From the sequence record NC_048779.1: a DNA stretch of 64,000 nucleotides; one strand, 5' to 3'. Below are positions 1 through 31,720 of this stretch, one piece after another (the stretch's first letter is position 1; each line of letters opens with the position of its first letter). Below the pieces are notes generated by a model. It had not been told where the DNA came from. It saw nothing but the letters and a program-made list of their open reading frames with translations, and did not search any database. Position numbers and translations under genes: made by a program.

Positions 1-1306
1 ACGATAGGTTAGCTTCGAAATCCACAATCATACGGTCGTGAATCATTTCTGCGTTGTACTTAGTGTAGAATTGTGCAAGCAGTGTTTCAGTTGCTTGTGT
101 CGCCAAGTATTGCCAATCAGGGTCTTTATCCACCATAGGTGCAGACTCACCCATTTGATATAATACAGGTAGACCGTTGATGACAATTTGACCCATGCCT
201 TGTTGCACATCATTGGTTGCACGAATGCTCAGATAAGATAGTCGATGACCATCCAGAATGGCATTGGCGATGTTGTTAAGCTCAGAACACACCAGTGTTT
301 CGAATGTAGAACCGCCCATAGCGTTAGAACTATAACGATGGTCAGCAACATCAAAACTACTCACGTCTGTTAGTTGGGCGTTGGTCACTTGGTAGAAGTT
401 CTCAAATACCGTTGCGATCTCACTCATACTAAATCCAACGAAGTTAGCCATGTTCACATAACCAAGTTCACGACGCATTACACGGATAAACGGGTTATCT
501 TCCAATGACACTTCACGGATACTGCTAAGACCAGTCGCCATGGAAATAGCTTCATAGCGGTCTTGACGCTTCTCGTTCTCAAACGACGCCGTTGCTGCTG
601 CCGTTAAGATTTTGTTTGCGTAATCCACCGTGGATTGGTTATTAGACTTGGAGATGTTCATACCCGCAGTTTGTAACATACCGGTACTTGAACCACCAAA
701 GCCGTCTAACATACCCGAAGGTTGTTCGTCATCGTCAAAGGCTGCAAAGGCTGATGCAGAGTTGATCACGTCTACCGGACGGATAGTGTGTAGTCCGTTA
801 TTAGGATTACCCATTGAGTTAGGGTCGTTCAACAAGTAAGTACCTGATTGTGACATCATACGACTTTCTTGTGGAAACCCGGTATGGTCGGTAGCTACAG
901 CGGTTTCCACCATCCACATGCGGACAGGGACAAACATCGCGTCAGCTGGTAACGCACCACCGGTGTCAGCCGGTGAACCCCCATACATGTAACCGTATAC
1001 TGTCAAGGTTTGCGCTTGCACCGGTGAAGCACCGTTGATAGCGAATTCAAAACTTGCTAGACCACGGGATGTTTGCCAGCCATCCTCGATGCCCGCTACA
1101 CCGGACGCTTGAGTCGCAACGCCACCAGAACGAGCTGCGATGTTGTTCATTTCCGATGGAGCCACTAATGAAGTATTACCTAGACGAGCACCAAGTAATT
1201 GGTTGGTGTCATCACCAGATAGGTTTAAAGAGTGCGCACGCATGTAGTGGTCGTGGTATTGGCTAGATAGACCGATAGTAGCGCGGATAAGTGCTAGTTG
1301 TGCCAT
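1..1306 (-). CDS. picA: Partial CDS (3' end runs off window); probable phage-nucleus import factor PicA/Imp1 (phiKZ gp69-like)
   Basis: Starts ATG at 1306 (MAQLALIRATIGLSSQYHDHYMRAH...) and is in frame with the window edge; missing from the ORF track because it has no stop here. Identity inferred only from synteny: it follows the gp68-like gene in the phiKZ order gp65(SbcD)-66-67-68-69. Confidence 0.55.
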   Translation of the reverse strand, partial: MAQLALIRATIGLSSQYHDHYMRAHSLNLSGDDTNQLLGARLGNTSLVAPSEMNNIAARSGGVATQASGVAGIEDGWQTSRGLASFEFAINGASPVQAQTLTVYGYMYGGSPADTGGALPADAMFVPVRMWMVETAVATDHTGFPQESRMMSQSGTYLLNDPNSMGNPNNGLHTIRPVDVINSASAFAAFDDDEQPSGMLDGFGGSSTGMLQTAGMNISKSNNQSTVDYANKILTAAATASFENEKRQDRYEAISMATGLSSIREVSLEDNPFIRVMRRELGYVNMANFVGFSMSEIATVFENFYQVTNAQLTDVSSFDVADHRYSSNAMGGSTFETLVCSELNNIANAILDGHRLSYLSIRATNDVQQGMGQIVINGLPVLYQMGESAPMVDKDPDWQYLATQATETLLAQFYTKYNAEMIHDRMIVDFEANLS

Positions 1307-7294: not shown

Positions 7295-7320
7295 ACACTT
7301 AGGTTATATAGACCTGAAAA
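7295..7320 (-). promoter_or_regulatory. Candidate phage promoter TTTTCAGGTCTATATAACCTAAGTGT
   Basis: 23/26 identical to 13740-13765 upstream of chimallin; core TATATAAC resembles the phiKZ early motif. Confidence 0.7.
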
Positions 7321-13739: not shown

Positions 13740-13765
13740 ACACCTAGGTTATATAGGACTGAAAA
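13740..13765 (-). promoter_or_regulatory. Candidate chimallin promoter TTTTCAGTCCTATATAACCTAGGTGT
   Basis: Near-copy (23/26) of 7295-7320; intergenic, ~80 nt upstream of the first ATG. Confidence 0.7.
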
Positions 13766-20414: not shown

Positions 20415-21380
20415 TTACCAGACCATCCCGGAATTGTCAGAGCCCTCTGTGAGGTCCTTAGAACGGGACTTAGTGAATTGGGTCTGACGTTCTACCGCTT
20501 TTTCTTTAGAACGCTCCATATCATTGATGATCTGTTCTGTTAGGCTATCGTACTCAAGCATCATGTGTAGTTCACCTGTATCGTTAGGAGTGATCGCATC
20601 TGGATGCATTACGCCCGTCACACGATACCCTTTACCGATTTGAACGGAACGGATGTCGTTACGAGAGCTGTATAGAGAGAAACTCGCTACCGCACTACCT
20701 TGACGTTTATCGATAGTCAGACCATCATAGAACTCAATACGAGTAAGAGATGGTGGGATATCGACCGCGCTAGAGTAATCCAACAAATGACGGATGTCCT
20801 CGTAGTCTGACTCTTCGTGTTTATCCGTTAAGAACAGCGATAGTAGGTTGAGACGCTCAACAGCGATTTTGTTTAACTCACCACGAGTTAAAGCTTCGTC
20901 GTTTTGTAACACATCCATTACGACCGGCATATCAAAATGCTTACGCTGACCATCCAGAGAACGCAGAGTCGCAATCGTGTTGTCCAGTTCGATGTCCGTG
21001 GTTTGATCGATCACGAGGAACGAAACTACCGGAATACCTGCTTCCATAAGGGCACGAACTAGGAAAGGACCAATGGTAGAACCTGACGCACCCGCACCAC
21101 TGTAAATCACAACGTTGAAATCCCCCGCTTTATGTTTCACCAACATTTGGTTAACAAAATCAGGAATGAGATCACGATTCAAAGTACGCTTCTTACCACC
21201 ACCGCGAGTGTTCGGTGGACACTCTAAAATGAACGAGTCATCATCCGGTTTATTGTTGGTAGACGTATCTAAACCGATGAACTCTACTTTAGAGATAGGA
21301 AGGTTTCTTAACGACTTCTTCCATGCAGAACCGATGTTAATACCCGCACCACCAATACACCATGCACGTAATGTAGACAT
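20415..21380 (-). CDS. phuZ: PhuZ phage tubulin, 321 aa
   Basis: CIGGAGINIG, GLDTS, RGGGKKR, SGAGASGSTIG tubulin/FtsZ GTPase loops; Chimalliviridae context. Confidence 0.93.
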   Translation of the reverse strand: MSTLRAWCIGGAGINIGSAWKKSLRNLPISKVEFIGLDTSTNNKPDDDSFILECPPNTRGGGKKRTLNRDLIPDFVNQMLVKHKAGDFNVVIYSGAGASGSTIGPFLVRALMEAGIPVVSFLVIDQTTDIELDNTIATLRSLDGQRKHFDMPVVMDVLQNDEALTRGELNKIAVERLNLLSLFLTDKHEESDYEDIRHLLDYSSAVDIPPSLTRIEFYDGLTIDKRQGSAVASFSLYSSRNDIRSVQIGKGYRVTGVMHPDAITPNDTGELHMMLEYDSLTEQIINDMERSKEKAVERQTQFTKSRSKDLTEGSDNSGMVW

Positions 21381-21421: not shown

Positions 21422-21851
21422 AAAAAAGCACCATCCCCTTCGCCGGGGATGGTCAAAGCAGTGGAACTCAGTGCCAATACTGAAATTACCCGAACTGGAT
21501 TCTTACGCGGTCGAAGAACCCAGCCGGCTAGCCTCGGCTTAGCATCCCTTGGTGGAGTGTAGGAGCTGAGGAAACACTCTCCATTTTTAAAGCGGTCAGG
21601 GGTGTACCGCTGTGGACGCTGAGTTAAAGGCTCAAGCGTCCTACGAACAAAAGTAGTGGCTTCTGTCCGAATAGGGTGGTTCAGGGGATGGCTTTAGTGA
21701 CATCGATGTTGACAAGGAGGACTCCCCCCTGAACCAGAATAGTTGTGAGCGGTTGTAATGAAGGAATAACTTCCTAGGTCGGACTCGCGGCATACACCTT
21801 TTCTTTTCGGACACGCTAGTCTAGCTAAACCTAATCTTGTACCGCTCACAT
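21422..21851 (-). ncRNA. Putative ~430-nt structured ncRNA of unassigned family
   Basis: No ORF >=60 aa. Perfect helices 21841-21850/21744-21753 (10 bp) and 21677-21687/21726-21736 (11 bp); 8-bp crossing pair 21806-21813/21664-21671; several more hairpins; promoter-like motif at the 5' end and terminator at the 3' end. Confidence 0.7.
21430..21453 (-). terminator. Terminator closing the structured element
   Basis: ACCATCCCC/GGGGATGGT stem followed by GCTTTTTTG. Confidence 0.8.
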
Positions 21852-21859
21852 ATAATGTA
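21848..21859 (-). promoter_or_regulatory. Promoter-like motif TACATTATATGT at the 5' end of the structured element
   Basis: Near-identical motifs at 25611-25622 and 30194-30205; resembles phiKZ early TATATTAC and contains the late TATG start motif. Confidence 0.6.
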
Positions 21860-21878: not shown

Positions 21879-22580
21879 TTAAAGACGGGTGTGTTGTTGA
21901 TAACGTTTAGGTCCCATTCCATATTTTTTCTCGAACTTCACTACGAAGTAACTAAAGTCGAGGAAGCCTAACTCCTCAGCGAGTTGACGCACCGACTTAT
22001 AGTAATTAGGTAGCTTGGCATGCGCTTGATTTAAACGCAAGTCTAATACGAATTGTTTCAACCCAAATCCATAGTGATGATTGATAATCAACTCTATTTC
22101 TTGGTGGGTTAAACGGAATCGGTCCGAGAGGGTCTGGATACTTAAACCGGTATCTTTGTAATGTTTCTTGACATGATCTAACAAAAACGTCTGACGTTGC
22201 ACCGTTAACTTGGGATGGGATTTAAACAAACCCCAAGCTAAATCACTGGTCTTCGGTCGGTTGCGATAATTTAAAGGGTACGTGCCAAATTGCTTAATGA
22301 AATTTTCTCTCAGCGTTTTATGATTAGTGTACCCAATTGCTCTGGCGATAGAGGTTAGGTTAAGATCTGTGTCGTCTAAGAGTTTCTTCGCTTCTAACAT
22401 TTTTAAATGGGTGATGTAATCATACAAACTCCCTTCACCTGCATCACGGAATAGTTTAATGACTCTAGTGGGTGAGATCCCTGTTTTCTTTAAAACTAAT
22501 TCCGAAGCATTAGGTTCCAAACAATATTTCTTAGCCGCATTTTTGAGCTTCTTGAACTCTCTGGAATTCTTATCAGACAC
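21879..22580 (-). CDS. Tandem double AraC/XylS HTH-domain protein, 233 aa
   Basis: ...AKKLLDDTDLNLTSIARAIGYTNHKTLRENFIKQFGTYPLNYR and ...SVRQLAEELGFLDFSYFVVKFEKKYGMGPKRY; no effector domain. Confidence 0.88.
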   Translation of the reverse strand: MSDKNSREFKKLKNAAKKYCLEPNASELVLKKTGISPTRVIKLFRDAGEGSLYDYITHLKMLEAKKLLDDTDLNLTSIARAIGYTNHKTLRENFIKQFGTYPLNYRNRPKTSDLAWGLFKSHPKLTVQRQTFLLDHVKKHYKDTGLSIQTLSDRFRLTHQEIELIINHHYGFGLKQFVLDLRLNQAHAKLPNYYKSVRQLAEELGFLDFSYFVVKFEKKYGMGPKRYQQHTRL

Positions 22581-23298
22581 AAGCGCCTCTCAAAGTTTCC
22601 CGGAGTTCAACGATATTAACCCCGTAGACTTCTTGGTATTGCTTCCGTAAATAGGTCGCACTACAAGAACCTACAGTAGTCGCCAAGTCTGTAATCTTAA
22701 TACTTGGATTTTTGTGGAGTAACTCCTTAGCTAATTTCATCCTAGTATCCTTTCTCCATTCACGATAGGTTTTACCGTAATAGTGTTCAAACATTTCACT
22801 TAAGCTACGATCTGGTAAACCAAACTTCTTTTCTACATCGGCGTAATTGAAATTGACTTTGATGTTTTTAAGTAGGTAATTCAATATCTTCTCACGCAAC
22901 TCATTAGGATAATATCGGTCCATAGTTTCTTTAGAATAAGAATCCATGGTCGGAACCTCGAGGGAATCCGTGTAATCTTCACGAGGGTGTCGTTTAAAGT
23001 AAGCCTTGTACTCTTTGGTAAAAGATTGGAAGTGAGAATACCCAACGTGGGCTCCAGCTAGTGTAGGTCTGATGCCCGATTCTAGCAAAGCTTTGGCTTT
23101 AACTAAGCGTTTACGTCGAAGATACTCACCCGGGGTGGTATTACGTTGTTCAGCAAACAAACGGTAGACATCCGGGATAAACACACCTAGTTGATGACTT
23201 AAGTCTTTGACCGTGACTTTTTCTAGGTAGTGTTCATTTATCCATTTGTCCAGATCTTCCATTAAACGAATTCTGGATTCTTTATCTACAGGGTACAT
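22573..23298 (-). CDS. Tandem double AraC/XylS HTH-domain protein, 241 aa
   Basis: TTPGEYLRRKRLVKAKALLES...VGYSHFQSFTKEYK and RMKLAKELLHKNPSIKITDLATTVG...YQEVYGV. Confidence 0.88.
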   Translation of the reverse strand: MYPVDKESRIRLMEDLDKWINEHYLEKVTVKDLSHQLGVFIPDVYRLFAEQRNTTPGEYLRRKRLVKAKALLESGIRPTLAGAHVGYSHFQSFTKEYKAYFKRHPREDYTDSLEVPTMDSYSKETMDRYYPNELREKILNYLLKNIKVNFNYADVEKKFGLPDRSLSEMFEHYYGKTYREWRKDTRMKLAKELLHKNPSIKITDLATTVGSCSATYLRKQYQEVYGVNIVELRETLRGACV

Positions 23299-24464
23299 AA
23301 TTCAGTTTCCTTTATTTTACCCAGACGGATATCGTCTTCTCTAATACATAAGTCGGCGTTAGTTTTAACAAAGCGAACAAACTGCTTGGTTTTGTTACGA
23401 CGAGTAAGTGGACCTTTATGTTTACGGATCTCCGCAGGAGTCAGTCCGTAGTTAGCCATTAAGTGTCTTCTGATGTCGTATTCATAATCCGAACCAACCT
23501 TCCTTAAGATCTTAGAAAACTTCCAACGAGTGTTTTGTAAAAAGTACACCACTATTTCCAATCGGATGAATAAGCGCGCCTTACTAGGTAACATGCCTGT
23601 GTAAAGAGTAAACATTCTTTCCCAAGAAGAAGTGTTTACTCCGTAAAATTCTCTCAGCTCAGTTAAGTGGGGACGATTTTCAAGCAGGTTTTCGGTAACG
23701 TTATCCACTATCTCTTCCATGAGGGAAGGGAGTATCCAGACGTTTTCACCATGGACTTTGGCCCACATACCGATAGATTTTGATTCACCAAATTCACTGG
23801 TAGTCATACCGTACTTTGCTTTAAAAGCTTTATTAAGTCCAGTAGGGGCGTTGTAGATGGTCATTTCCAGTAAACGGGTTTCTTTATACCCGTGAGTTTT
23901 GATTTGCTCGGCAACGTACTCTAGTTGCTTATTTAACAAATAAGCCCTAGGAGTTACTCCGTGTAGTTCAATGAATTTCTGTCTAATGTAAGTGGTGGTG
24001 TAAACACTGTCGTTTATTAATACATTGACGTCTTTGTATAAGTACGGATTAAGGTCGATCTTTTCAACGATGGAGCTGATAACCGCATCGACTACACCTA
24101 AACTCGGTCTTTTTGATTTTAACCCCATGCGCGCACGGACCTTAGTAGGGCGCTCTCCAAAAACGGATAAATACCAAACGTAAAAGTTTGATGTTTTATC
24201 ATACCCTAAGGTTTTAGCGATTTCTTCTAGTGAAAGTTCACCGTCAGAGACTAAACGCTTAGCTAAATCCTTACGTAACTCTTTCAAGTGATGTGTAGGG
24301 GTTTCTAAACCTTGATTTAGAAAACGCACAGTCAATACATCTGGGGCGATGTTTTGCATTTTTGCAATGTCGACGAATTTACGTTTTTCTTTATAATGCG
24401 CATTAATGTTCGCTATTGTGGTCAAAACGATTTCATCGTCGATTCCTAGTGTATCTATGGACAT
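23286..24464 (-). CDS. Triple AraC/XylS HTH-domain protein, 392 aa
   Basis: Three ~100-aa units ending FGERPTKVR, YGMTTSEF and YGLTPAEIR; first unit has LSLEEIAKTLGY. Confidence 0.82.
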   Translation of the reverse strand: MSIDTLGIDDEIVLTTIANINAHYKEKRKFVDIAKMQNIAPDVLTVRFLNQGLETPTHHLKELRKDLAKRLVSDGELSLEEIAKTLGYDKTSNFYVWYLSVFGERPTKVRARMGLKSKRPSLGVVDAVISSIVEKIDLNPYLYKDVNVLINDSVYTTTYIRQKFIELHGVTPRAYLLNKQLEYVAEQIKTHGYKETRLLEMTIYNAPTGLNKAFKAKYGMTTSEFGESKSIGMWAKVHGENVWILPSLMEEIVDNVTENLLENRPHLTELREFYGVNTSSWERMFTLYTGMLPSKARLFIRLEIVVYFLQNTRWKFSKILRKVGSDYEYDIRRHLMANYGLTPAEIRKHKGPLTRRNKTKQFVRFVKTNADLCIREDDIRLGKIKETELCTL

Positions 24465-24501: not shown

Positions 24502-24529
24502 ATCCTGCTTGCTGAAGAGCAAGCAGGAT
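24502..24529 (-). terminator. Hairpin terminator upstream of the AraC operon
   Basis: ATCCTGCTTGCT/AGCAAGCAGGAT 12-bp stem. Confidence 0.75.
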
Positions 24530-25381: not shown

Positions 25382-25389
25382 GTAATATA
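25382..25389 (-). promoter_or_regulatory. Early promoter motif TATATTAC
   Basis: Exact phiKZ early consensus, ~65 nt upstream of ATG 25315. Confidence 0.65.
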
Positions 25390-25435
25390 GAGATATAATT
25401 CCTTTATCTGATTACAGCAAGTTTATTACATGAAC

Positions 25436-29833: not shown

Positions 29834-29884
29834 GGTCTAATAACCTTAATTAACGTATAAATATTCAAAATGCAGTATAAACCC

Positions 29885-29914
29885 TAGTAGGACTCCTTAA
29901 CGGATATCCTACTA
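29885..29914 (-). terminator. Hairpin at the 3' end of intergenic element 3
   Basis: TAGTAGGA/TCCTACTA 8-bp stem. Confidence 0.45.
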
Positions 29915-30205
29915 TGCATCTATGCCTTCTTAACGTATGACTCTTTACCTTAACCACTTCACTCGTGATACTCGTTACGTTGTAAGGAAGTCATACTCTA
30001 TAGTTAGATATATTAATATATTAATATTAATTATCTTGGGCTTTGCCCGATTCTTTTTAACTAACTTTGAACCACTAACCTTGGAACCCTCTCAACCTTG
30101 GAACCCCTCTTTCTCCCCTTACGAAATTGCATTTTAGGGTGCAAAATCATAGGGAAAATCGTTCAAAAAAGTTAGGGTAAAAAGGTTTTTGTAACATATA
30201 ATACA
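29885..30205. other. Intergenic element 3: structured RNA or replication-origin-like region
   Basis: AT-only run 30008-30034, 13-bp direct repeats 30077-30089 and 30094-30106, stem 29935-29942/29989-29996, TGTATTATATGT motif at 30194-30205. Confidence 0.45.
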
Positions 30206-30222
30206 TGTTACTTAGTTTTTAA

Positions 30223-31687: not shown

Positions 31688-31695
31688 ATAATATA
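31688..31695 (-). promoter_or_regulatory. Candidate early promoter TATATTAT
   Basis: Lies between a terminator and the next ATG. Confidence 0.5.
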
Positions 31696-31720
31696 GATTT
31701 GAATAAAAATAAAAGCGAAG

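Follow-up and report, generated by a model that had tools for sequence, protein, structure and literature searches.

The window analysed here is a 64,000-nt stretch of the sequence record NC_048779.1, which belongs to Vibrio phage USC-1, a PhuZ-encoding, nucleus-forming jumbo phage of the Gorgonvirinae. Three consecutive genes on the minus strand of this window, here called A, B and C, encode proteins related to the AraC transcription regulators, and the features of the locus are listed in Table 1. Genes A and B overlap by 13 nt (ATG..TAG), and genes B and C by 8 nt (GTG..TGA); the reading frames, their lengths and both overlaps agree with the preliminary description of this DNA. A Shine-Dalgarno-like AAGGAA or GAGAGG is located 6-8 nt 5' of each overlapping start. 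The three genes thus form one translationally coupled block. Genes for the phage nucleus and for replication surround the block, among them phuZ and the gene for the DNA polymerase.

Table 1. Genes, AraC units and flanking signals at the AraC locus of Vibrio phage USC-1 (positions in the window)
Feature	Position (nt)	Strand	Position (aa)	Description
Gene A (gp143)	23286..24464	-		392 aa; three AraC units
A unit 1	24120..24431	-	12-115	custom HMM; seven helices in the model
A unit 2	23772..24083	-	128-231	most divergent unit; custom HMM and model
A unit 3	23409..23723	-	248-352	custom HMM and model; beta-hairpin link to unit 2
Gene B (gp142)	22573..23298	-		241 aa; two AraC units
B units 1 and 2		-	12-113, 134-238	custom HMM
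Gene C (gp141)	21879..22580	-		233 aa; GTG start; two AraC units
C units 1 and 2		-	8-111, 129-233	custom HMM
Stem-loop with T-rich tract	24502..24529	-		between gp144 and gene A; putative terminator or processing hairpin
Early-type promoter motif, TCTATATTAC core	25382..25391	-		virion RNA polymerase-like; 67 nt upstream of gp144
Terminator-like hairpin	21430..21453	-		first strong one downstream of gene C

The domain search showed that the Pfam family HTH_18 matches three stretches in A, two in B and two in C. The scores (93.3, 93.0 and 99.0 bits, respectively) are far above the curated cut-off of 33.6 bits, and the whole-protein E-values of 1e-26 to 2e-28 exclude chance, so that A, B and C belong to the AraC/XylS family by this cut-off. 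A profile HMM made from the units themselves recovered full-length copies, covering about 100 of its 104 positions. In a six-frame, unit-by-unit scan with HTH_18, units 2 and 3 of A stayed under the cut-off (31.4 and 24.1 bits); these two units are nevertheless supported by the whole-protein score, the custom HMM and the structure model. No domain other than the HTH families passed the Pfam threshold in the three proteins. Their full length is explained by the units, the linkers and a 40-aa tail, and an N-terminal sensor or dimerisation domain is absent. The count of three, two and two complete double-HTH units and the lack of a sensor domain, both read from the translations in the preliminary description, are therefore borne out by the profiles and the models together, and a single intact unit per protein is ruled out.

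The predicted structures also showed the AraC fold. The AlphaFold2 model of A (mean pLDDT 88) contains three units and the AlphaFold model of B two units, each of seven helices with two HTH motifs joined by a long helix. The connector between units 2 and 3 of A (residues 234-243) was modelled confidently, and residues 360-380 of A form a C-terminal helix. The linkers at residues 113-119 of B and 116-122 of A appear flexible, the former being a low-confidence segment that joins the two units of B; the pTM values of the models are 0.48 and 0.60. The best solved-structure matches of the A model are the AraC-type DNA-binding domains of YesN, MarA, GadX, AdpA, SoxS and Rob, over about 100 columns each, and the Foldseek TM-scores (normalised to the target) were 0.7-0.8 to YesN, MarA, AdpA, GadX and SoxS. 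The modelled fold is the same as that of the DNA-bound MarA, SoxS, Rob and AdpA domains. Moreover, the proteins are basic, with a pI of 9.2-9.8 and a net charge of +8 to +18, which is compatible with a putative role in DNA binding. The possible degeneration of the recognition helices, raised earlier, was addressed in part. At the helix-6 positions that we take to be the DNA contacts of MarA (Q, T, T and R), unit 1 of B carries Q, S, T and K, and the helix-3 arginine is kept; across the related phages, helices 3 and 6 are conserved no better than the scaffold (0.34-0.38 vs 0.31-0.41).

Comparison with the known regulators showed both similarities and differences. MarA and SoxS consist solely of a double-HTH domain of about 100 aa without a ligand domain, as do the units of A, B and C; the alignment of unit 1 of B spans nearly all of SoxS and MarA, and that of unit 1 of C nearly all of SoxS. 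With one unit each, MarA and SoxS differ from the phage proteins, which chain two or three, with seven in the whole operon. In the canonical members AraC, XylS, ToxT and ExsA, an N-terminal domain serves for ligand binding or dimerisation, and the proteins occupy paired sites as dimers. Their C-terminal DNA-binding domain is homologous to the phage units; the phage proteins carry extra DNA-binding units where the N-terminal domain would be. The NCBIfam models that matched (AraC, RhaS, RhaR and others) did so in the C-terminal DNA-binding region only, and ToxT and ExsA were absent from the matches. The scores for SoxS, MarA, RamA and Rob were 17-51 bits against cut-offs of 174-426, the best being SoxS with 50.8 (cut-off 174), MarA with 35 (202) and Rob with 25 (426), and the cut-off of no NCBIfam equivalog was approached. 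A, B and C thus fall outside the MarA/SoxS/Rob/RamA subfamily, both by the equivalog cut-offs and by having more than a single unit. None of the three proteins matched the anti-phage defence families of PADLOC.

Every solved-structure match and every NCBIfam match covers one unit only. The statement that AraC/XylS proteins normally have one unit therefore holds for the solved and named proteins; however, sensor-less proteins with two to five tandem AraC units exist in bacterial genomes and metagenomes. For example, the bacterial tandem-AraC protein P0108 (224 aa) is encoded on a 645-kb contig next to arginine-biosynthesis genes, and the gene of P0021 (677 aa, five units) lies between ECF sigma-factor genes. 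Other bacterial examples are the AlphaFold DB clusters A0A7X6Y2A2, A0A4Q1C5F8 and A0A1C6CKP6, and one AlphaFold DB tandem-AraC protein superposes on units 2-3 of A with an rmsd of 4.4 over 231 columns. The architecture is thus not phage-specific. These bacterial proteins likewise have HTH_18 units and no sensor domain; their identity to the phage proteins is about 25-30% (E-values 1e-9 to 1e-3), they are single genes in a cellular context, whereas the phage has a coupled trio, and none of them has been characterised.

The phage proteins have been named before. They carry the RefSeq label 'transcriptional regulator', and they match PHROG 7620, of the same name, with E-values of 1.6e-141 (A), 2e-67 (B) and 1.9e-53 (C). 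The literature search on tandem AraC architectures and on AraC proteins in nucleus-forming phages returned one sentence, in which AraC-like HTH activators are noted in group 1 jumbo phages (Iyer et al. 2021). These sources name the domain, but not the tandem 3+2+2 arrangement, its conservation or its function. The architecture is therefore weakly anticipated, and the 3+2+2 trio itself is undescribed there.

The trio was found with the same 3+2+2 composition and the same gene order in ten phage lineages. In the tree of units, each of the seven unit positions forms its own orthologous clade, which suggests that each unit has a retained role of its own. The dN/dS of the three genes is 0.05-0.15; the block is real, conserved and under purifying selection. 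When phages of closely related Vibrio hosts are compared, A, B and C have changed far more rapidly than the neighbouring proteins. For example, between USC-1 and phage phiKT1019 the identity is 30% for A, 51% for B and 42% for C, compared with 79% for gp144 and 77% for PhuZ. A word-indexed protein search with B gave no match outside its own cluster. Recent capture from a host was considered and rejected, because the best non-phage matches are just 26-35% identical, over one unit.

To our knowledge, no gene-specific transcription factor is known for nucleus-forming jumbo phages, and within this phage subfamily these seven conserved and selected AraC-type units stand out as the clearest candidates for a set of regulators. 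Our favoured explanation, held tentatively and given somewhat less than an even chance, is that A, B and C act independently of a ligand and read long composite sites, the favoured target being the phage's own DNA. Covalent tandem repetition (three, two and two units; 14 HTH motifs) would replace the sensor and dimerisation domains. Each monomer might then read about 20 bp per unit, or 40-60 bp per protein, and its activity would presumably be set by protein amount alone, as for MarA and SoxS. The three proteins would be made together from the coupled block, imported into the phage nucleus, and there regulate or organise phage transcription. Phage DNA is favoured over conserved host promoters because the reading helices drift quickly; the fast divergence and the unconserved helices 3 and 6 fit sites that co-evolve with the proteins. 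The divergence is also compatible with an arms race against a host factor. The intergenic motif and repeat searches gave no binding site: among intergenic k-mers only the early-promoter-like TCTATATTAC and T-runs were enriched, and neither Tandem Repeats Finder nor a second repeat search found iteron-like arrays. If phage DNA is the target, the proteins raise the question of how gene timing is achieved in such phages. Covalent arrays in place of dimerisation, which bacteria have as well, would also be an unstudied route for AraC proteins to long sites. What emerges so far is a well-founded lead and not yet a mechanism.

The main competing explanation places the targets in the host. Cytoplasmic A, B and C might bind the Vibrio chromosome and switch host genes on through the host RNA polymerase, in the style of MarA and SoxS, or off by occlusion, and so shift stress, metabolic, defence or virulence regulons in favour of infection; the proteins would then be a takeover tool. 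Among the structural matches, the complexes of SoxS, Rob and MarA show the AraC fold in contact with the host RNA polymerase, and the sensor-less units may be likened to MarA and SoxS. Upstream of the block, the closest promoter that can be recognised lies just upstream of the neighbouring gp144; it has the TCTATATTAC core of an early-type motif described previously (PMC5312081), which would fit an early takeover of the host. It has also been suggested that jumbo-phage transcription factors perhaps modulate host transcription (Iyer et al. 2021). However, a conserved hairpin stands between that promoter and the AraC block; it is kept in related phages through compensatory changes, and is likely a terminator or processing hairpin that marks the 5' boundary of the block. 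Moreover, the unconserved reading helices and the fast divergence across related Vibrio hosts argue against conserved host promoters. The preliminary description had named the ToxT, ExsA, MarA, SoxS and Rob regulons as possible targets; the NCBIfam scores, remote from the equivalog cut-offs of host-type and other regulators, give no link to any of them. Host reprogramming is regarded as rather unlikely, and as somewhat less likely than the phage-DNA reading.

If the proteins do read phage DNA, their partner might be a phage enzyme. AraC-family activators normally act by touching the sigma-70 or alpha subunits of the host polymerase. As far as we know, equivalents of sigma and alpha, and hence these surfaces, are absent from the RNA polymerases of this phage group, so that phage genes could be activated only through some new contact, a point against the phage-DNA reading. 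Phages of this group are transcribed by their own RNA polymerases (PMC5312081). The AraC arrays might be dedicated factors for the sigma-less multisubunit phage RNA polymerase in the phage nucleus, reading long composite phage sites and controlling when the middle or late genes, or the structured RNA next to the block, are expressed. This narrower possibility is a long shot. If true, the arrays would be the first gene-specific regulators known for transcription in nucleus-forming jumbo phages, and would represent an AraC domain that acts without sigma-70 or alpha contacts. The sequencing runs that match the sequence were DNA or metagenome runs only, and no RNA run was among them.

An architectural role is improbable, though not quite so remote. 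The proteins would then be low-specificity arrays, i.e. nucleoid-associated or compaction proteins for phage (or host) DNA and not gene-specific regulators. Such a role would suit basic, multivalent proteins with flexible inter-unit linkers, poorly conserved contact helices, and genes located among those for the nucleus and replication. However, AraC domains are typically sequence-specific DNA binders, and seven distinct orthologous clades, maintained over a long divergence, suggest specific roles and not a generic coating.

The AraC block is always followed by a long noncoding stretch. In USC-1 this stretch, at 21422-21859, separates gene C from phuZ and is about 430 nt long, with the terminator-like hairpin at its end; no terminator was found between it and gene C, and the AraC transcript may, judging from these signals, extend through it. 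Rfam had no match over the block and its flanks. This arrangement is compatible with a role outside DNA reading, in which the units would bind the adjacent structured RNA or serve as protein decoys or adaptors that sequester host RNA polymerase subunits or AraC partners. Such a role is very unlikely, and the basic charge and the retained MarA-like contact residues point instead to the binding of a nucleic-acid duplex.

The three overlapping genes A, B and C of Vibrio phage USC-1 encode seven intact, selected and basic AraC units without a ligand domain. The preliminary description had placed ORFs of 392, 241 and 233 aa here, and they were found on the minus strand exactly at those positions; the overlaps of 13 nt (ATG..TAG) and 8 nt (GTG..TGA) were also recovered at the junctions. 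A Shine-Dalgarno-like sequence precedes both junctions (A/B and B/C), and together with the overlapping starts and stops this is a typical pattern of translational coupling. The Pfam profile HTH_18 matched three, two and two stretches in A, B and C (whole-protein E 1e-26 to 2e-28), in agreement with the unit counts first proposed, and an HMM made from the units detected seven full-length copies. Units 2 and 3 of A scored only 31.4 and 24.1 bits in a six-frame unit-by-unit scan, under the Pfam cut-off; the protein-level score, the specific HMM and the predicted structure still support them. Neither a sensor or dimerisation domain, whose absence had been claimed, nor any other Pfam domain was found in the three proteins, all of which are basic (pI 9.2-9.8).

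The AlphaFold2 model of A, built from a seven-sequence alignment, has the three expected bundles of seven helices (mean pLDDT 88), with a low-confidence linker (116-122), a confident β-hairpin joining unit 2 to unit 3, and a helix at the C-terminus (360-380). The model of B (pTM 0.48) likewise has two bundles of seven helices, joined by a linker of low confidence (113-119). The predicted arrangement of the units is that of beads on a string. Foldseek matches to solved structures were all AraC-type DNA-binding domains (YesN, MarA-DNA, GadX, AdpA-DNA, the SoxS and Rob transcription complexes, ToxT and Rns), with alignments of about 100 columns each and target-normalised TM-scores of 0.7-0.8. The β-hairpin connector and the C-terminal helix of A are non-AraC segments kept in the orthologues. 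G232 is invariant and a tryptophan nearly always conserved at the connector; a T-E/K-Q-F-like motif precedes the helix. Both segments could be interaction or import determinants.

Coordinates of the AraC genes, their units and associated features (window positions unless stated; record coordinate in NC_048779 = window coordinate + 124000)
Feature	Coordinates	Strand	Remark
Gene A	23286-24464	-	
Gene B	22573-23298	-	
Gene C	21879-22580	-	
A units	aa 12-115, 128-231, 248-352	-	unit HMM
B units	aa 12-113, 134-238	-	unit HMM
C units	aa 8-111, 129-233	-	unit HMM
β-hairpin connector of A	aa 234-243 (23736-23765)		
C-terminal helix region of A	aa 353-392 (23289-23408)		
TCTATATTAC-type motif	7303-7312, 13748-13757, 25382-25391 (perfect core), 31688-31697	-	about 16 more genome-wide
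Stem-loop and T-rich tract	24502-24529		between gp144 and A
Noncoding stretch after C	21422-21859	-	about 430 nt
Terminator	21430-21453		strong
TATG	about 21850-21853		in noncoding stretch
phuZ	20415-21380		PHROG 4733, E 7.7e-103
AT-rich, gene-poor region	29834-30222		
Direct repeat	30077-30106		AACCTTGGAACCC, two copies
Fourth AraC-like gene	G000:C1:25695-26660; L018:859-1827	-	outside the window
pTD1 gp140	L001 6944-7537		annotated 197 aa
P0021 gene	L009:4702-6735		metagenomic bacterial

The trio is a real, conserved feature, and belongs to the AraC/XylS family as sensor-less tandem arrays. In NCBIfam, single units give generic matches to many AraC regulators, at their DNA-binding ends; none neared an equivalog cut-off (SoxS 50.8 vs 174, MarA 35 vs 202). 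Unit 1 of B and unit 1 of C align across nearly the whole length of SoxS. At the DNA-contact positions of the MarA-DNA structure, the helix-6 contacts Q, T, T and R of MarA correspond to Q, S, T and K in B unit 1, which also has the helix-3 arginine. No PADLOC profile matched A, B or C. The genes are already loosely annotated: RefSeq labels each a 'transcriptional regulator', and PHROG 7620 covers all three. AraC-like HTH activators in group 1 jumbo phages were mentioned in one sentence by Iyer et al. 2021 (PMC7824862), and no paper on the tandem AraC architecture or its function was found in the literature. USC-1 also has a fourth AraC-like gene (322 aa, PHROG 27247), with one clear unit at aa 17-121 (HTH_18 31 bits, just below the cut-off; hhalign probability 90%) and weak hints of degenerate extra units at about 120-209, 196-283 and 247-304.

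An exhaustive HMMER search with A over 1.84 billion representative proteins returned six close phage relatives first, and then proteins with multiple AraC units. Among these, five HTH_18 stretches were counted in P0021 (677 aa) and four, preceded by ankyrin repeats, in P0009 (670 aa); the shorter P0010, P0012, P0019, P0041, P0054 and P0108 (224-300 aa) each have two or three. The architectures of P0021 and P0009 are both uncharacterised. The apparent eight-stretch protein P0011 was a false positive, a PPR-repeat protein. Genomic contexts were cellular: the P0021 gene is flanked by two ECF sigma-factor genes (10.6-kb contig), P0108 adjoins ABC-transporter and arginine-biosynthesis genes on a 645-kb contig, and a P0041 relative lies on a 506-kb contig. 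Proteins made up solely of AraC units, and aligning over two or three units of A, also occur in the AlphaFold DB fold clusters and in the ESM Atlas. The earlier statement that AraC proteins normally have one unit therefore holds; the comparison of phages with bacteria showed that tandem arrays without a sensor are not phage-specific. In bacteria they are an existing, uncharacterised minority architecture.

The window matches USC-1 at 100% identity. This phage (238 kb; Gorgonvirinae, genus Aphroditevirus; host Vibrio alginolyticus) carries the PhuZ tubulin gene directly downstream of the trio, which indicates a phiKZ-like, nucleus-forming jumbo phage. The A-B-C order and the 3+2+2 unit count are common to Aphrodite1, PDCC-1, 2 TSL-2019, phiKT1019, pTD1 and VP4B, and to three metagenomic contigs (L008, L021 and L022); phiKT1028 likewise gave matches to the trio. 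In L007, a metagenomic relative at greater distance (PhuZ about 44% identical), only one three-unit gene precedes phuZ. A survey of 50,697 phage records placed the trio in Gorgonvirinae only; elsewhere there were just a few single-unit matches, to fragments of gut phages and to one Enterococcus phage. A maximum-likelihood phylogeny of 42 units, drawn from six phages, separated the seven unit positions into one clade each, without resolution of the branching order among them; the clade of C unit 1 had weaker support (83/72), and the other six were well supported. The common ancestor therefore already had seven distinct units, each of which has been kept since. The dN/dS of the trio is 0.05-0.15 among Aphroditevirus genomes, similar to that of PhuZ and of gp144, the neighbour upstream of A. 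At longer distances, A, B and C drift much faster than these neighbours: USC-1 and phiKT1019 share 30%, 51% and 42% identity in A, B and C, vs 79% in gp144 and 77% in PhuZ.

The block (21879-24464 compared with L003, L004 and L010) is a mosaic in its synonymous divergence. B has a dS of 0.4-0.7 against every Aphroditevirus relative; dS is saturated or >2 for A against 2 TSL-2019 and PDCC-1 and for C against 2 TSL-2019. C of USC-1 is near PDCC-1 (dS 0.44) and distant from 2 TSL-2019. This pattern suggests recombination breakpoints inside the operon. The first unit of pTD1 gp140 is truncated as annotated; in tblastn, homology to C continues for another 87 nt in front of the annotated start, so that this start is probably set wrongly, or the gene frameshifted. 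The Tidunavirus phages pTD1 and VP4B (L001, L006) keep a 650-940-nt noncoding gap after the trio, without an annotated phuZ.

By analogy with MarA, each unit would bind about 20 bp, so the arrays might read composite sites of 40-60 bp as monomers. Tandem repetition would thus take over the job of dimerisation in AraC, and protein level may be the sole control, as for MarA and SoxS. Phage DNA is favoured as the target, because the DNA-reading helices 3 and 6 are no more conserved than the scaffold, and the trio diverges far faster than its neighbours among phages of closely related Vibrio hosts. Co-evolution of sites and readers on one genome would predict such divergence, and reading of conserved host promoters less so. 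Against a phage-DNA target, AraC activators normally work via host sigma-70 or alpha subunits, which to our knowledge the phage polymerases lack, the proteins would have to be imported into the phage nucleus, and sequence searches found no candidate binding sites for the trio. Reprogramming of the host by A, B and C is a serious rival. An architectural role, or one apart from DNA, is less likely. For a nucleus-forming phage lineage, the trio provides the best set of candidate regulators, and is of moderate interest as such.

The strongest intergenic motif of the genome is TCTATATTAC, with variants TCTATATAAC and TCTATATTAT. The 8-mer CTATATTA is intergenic in 10 of its 11 genome copies, intergenic DNA being 5% of the genome. 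In about 20 good copies the motif precedes a minus-strand gene by 5-100 nt, usually with a TTTCAA-like AT-rich sequence before it and GTG a few bases after; one perfect core is found 67 nt before gp144. In phiKZ-like phages (phiKZ and AR9 motifs), the early promoters of the virion RNA polymerase are AT-rich, with the start site 6 nt downstream (PMC5312081), and by analogy TCTATATTAC is probably this promoter in USC-1. A 12-bp stem-loop with a T-rich tract separates gp144 from A and is kept in seven phages via compensatory changes, and no early-type motif was found between it and A. Transcription of the block therefore either starts at the gp144 promoter and reads through, or starts at an unrecognised promoter. 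The first terminator found after C is the strong one that ends the noncoding stretch preceding phuZ, so this stretch may form a long 3' tail of the AraC transcript, possibly co-transcribed with the trio. It contains a TATG, and is alignable beyond the genus in its 3' part only. The AT-rich, gene-poor region about 5.5 kb upstream of the block contains an exact 13-nt direct repeat, its two copies 17 nt apart, and other short repeats.
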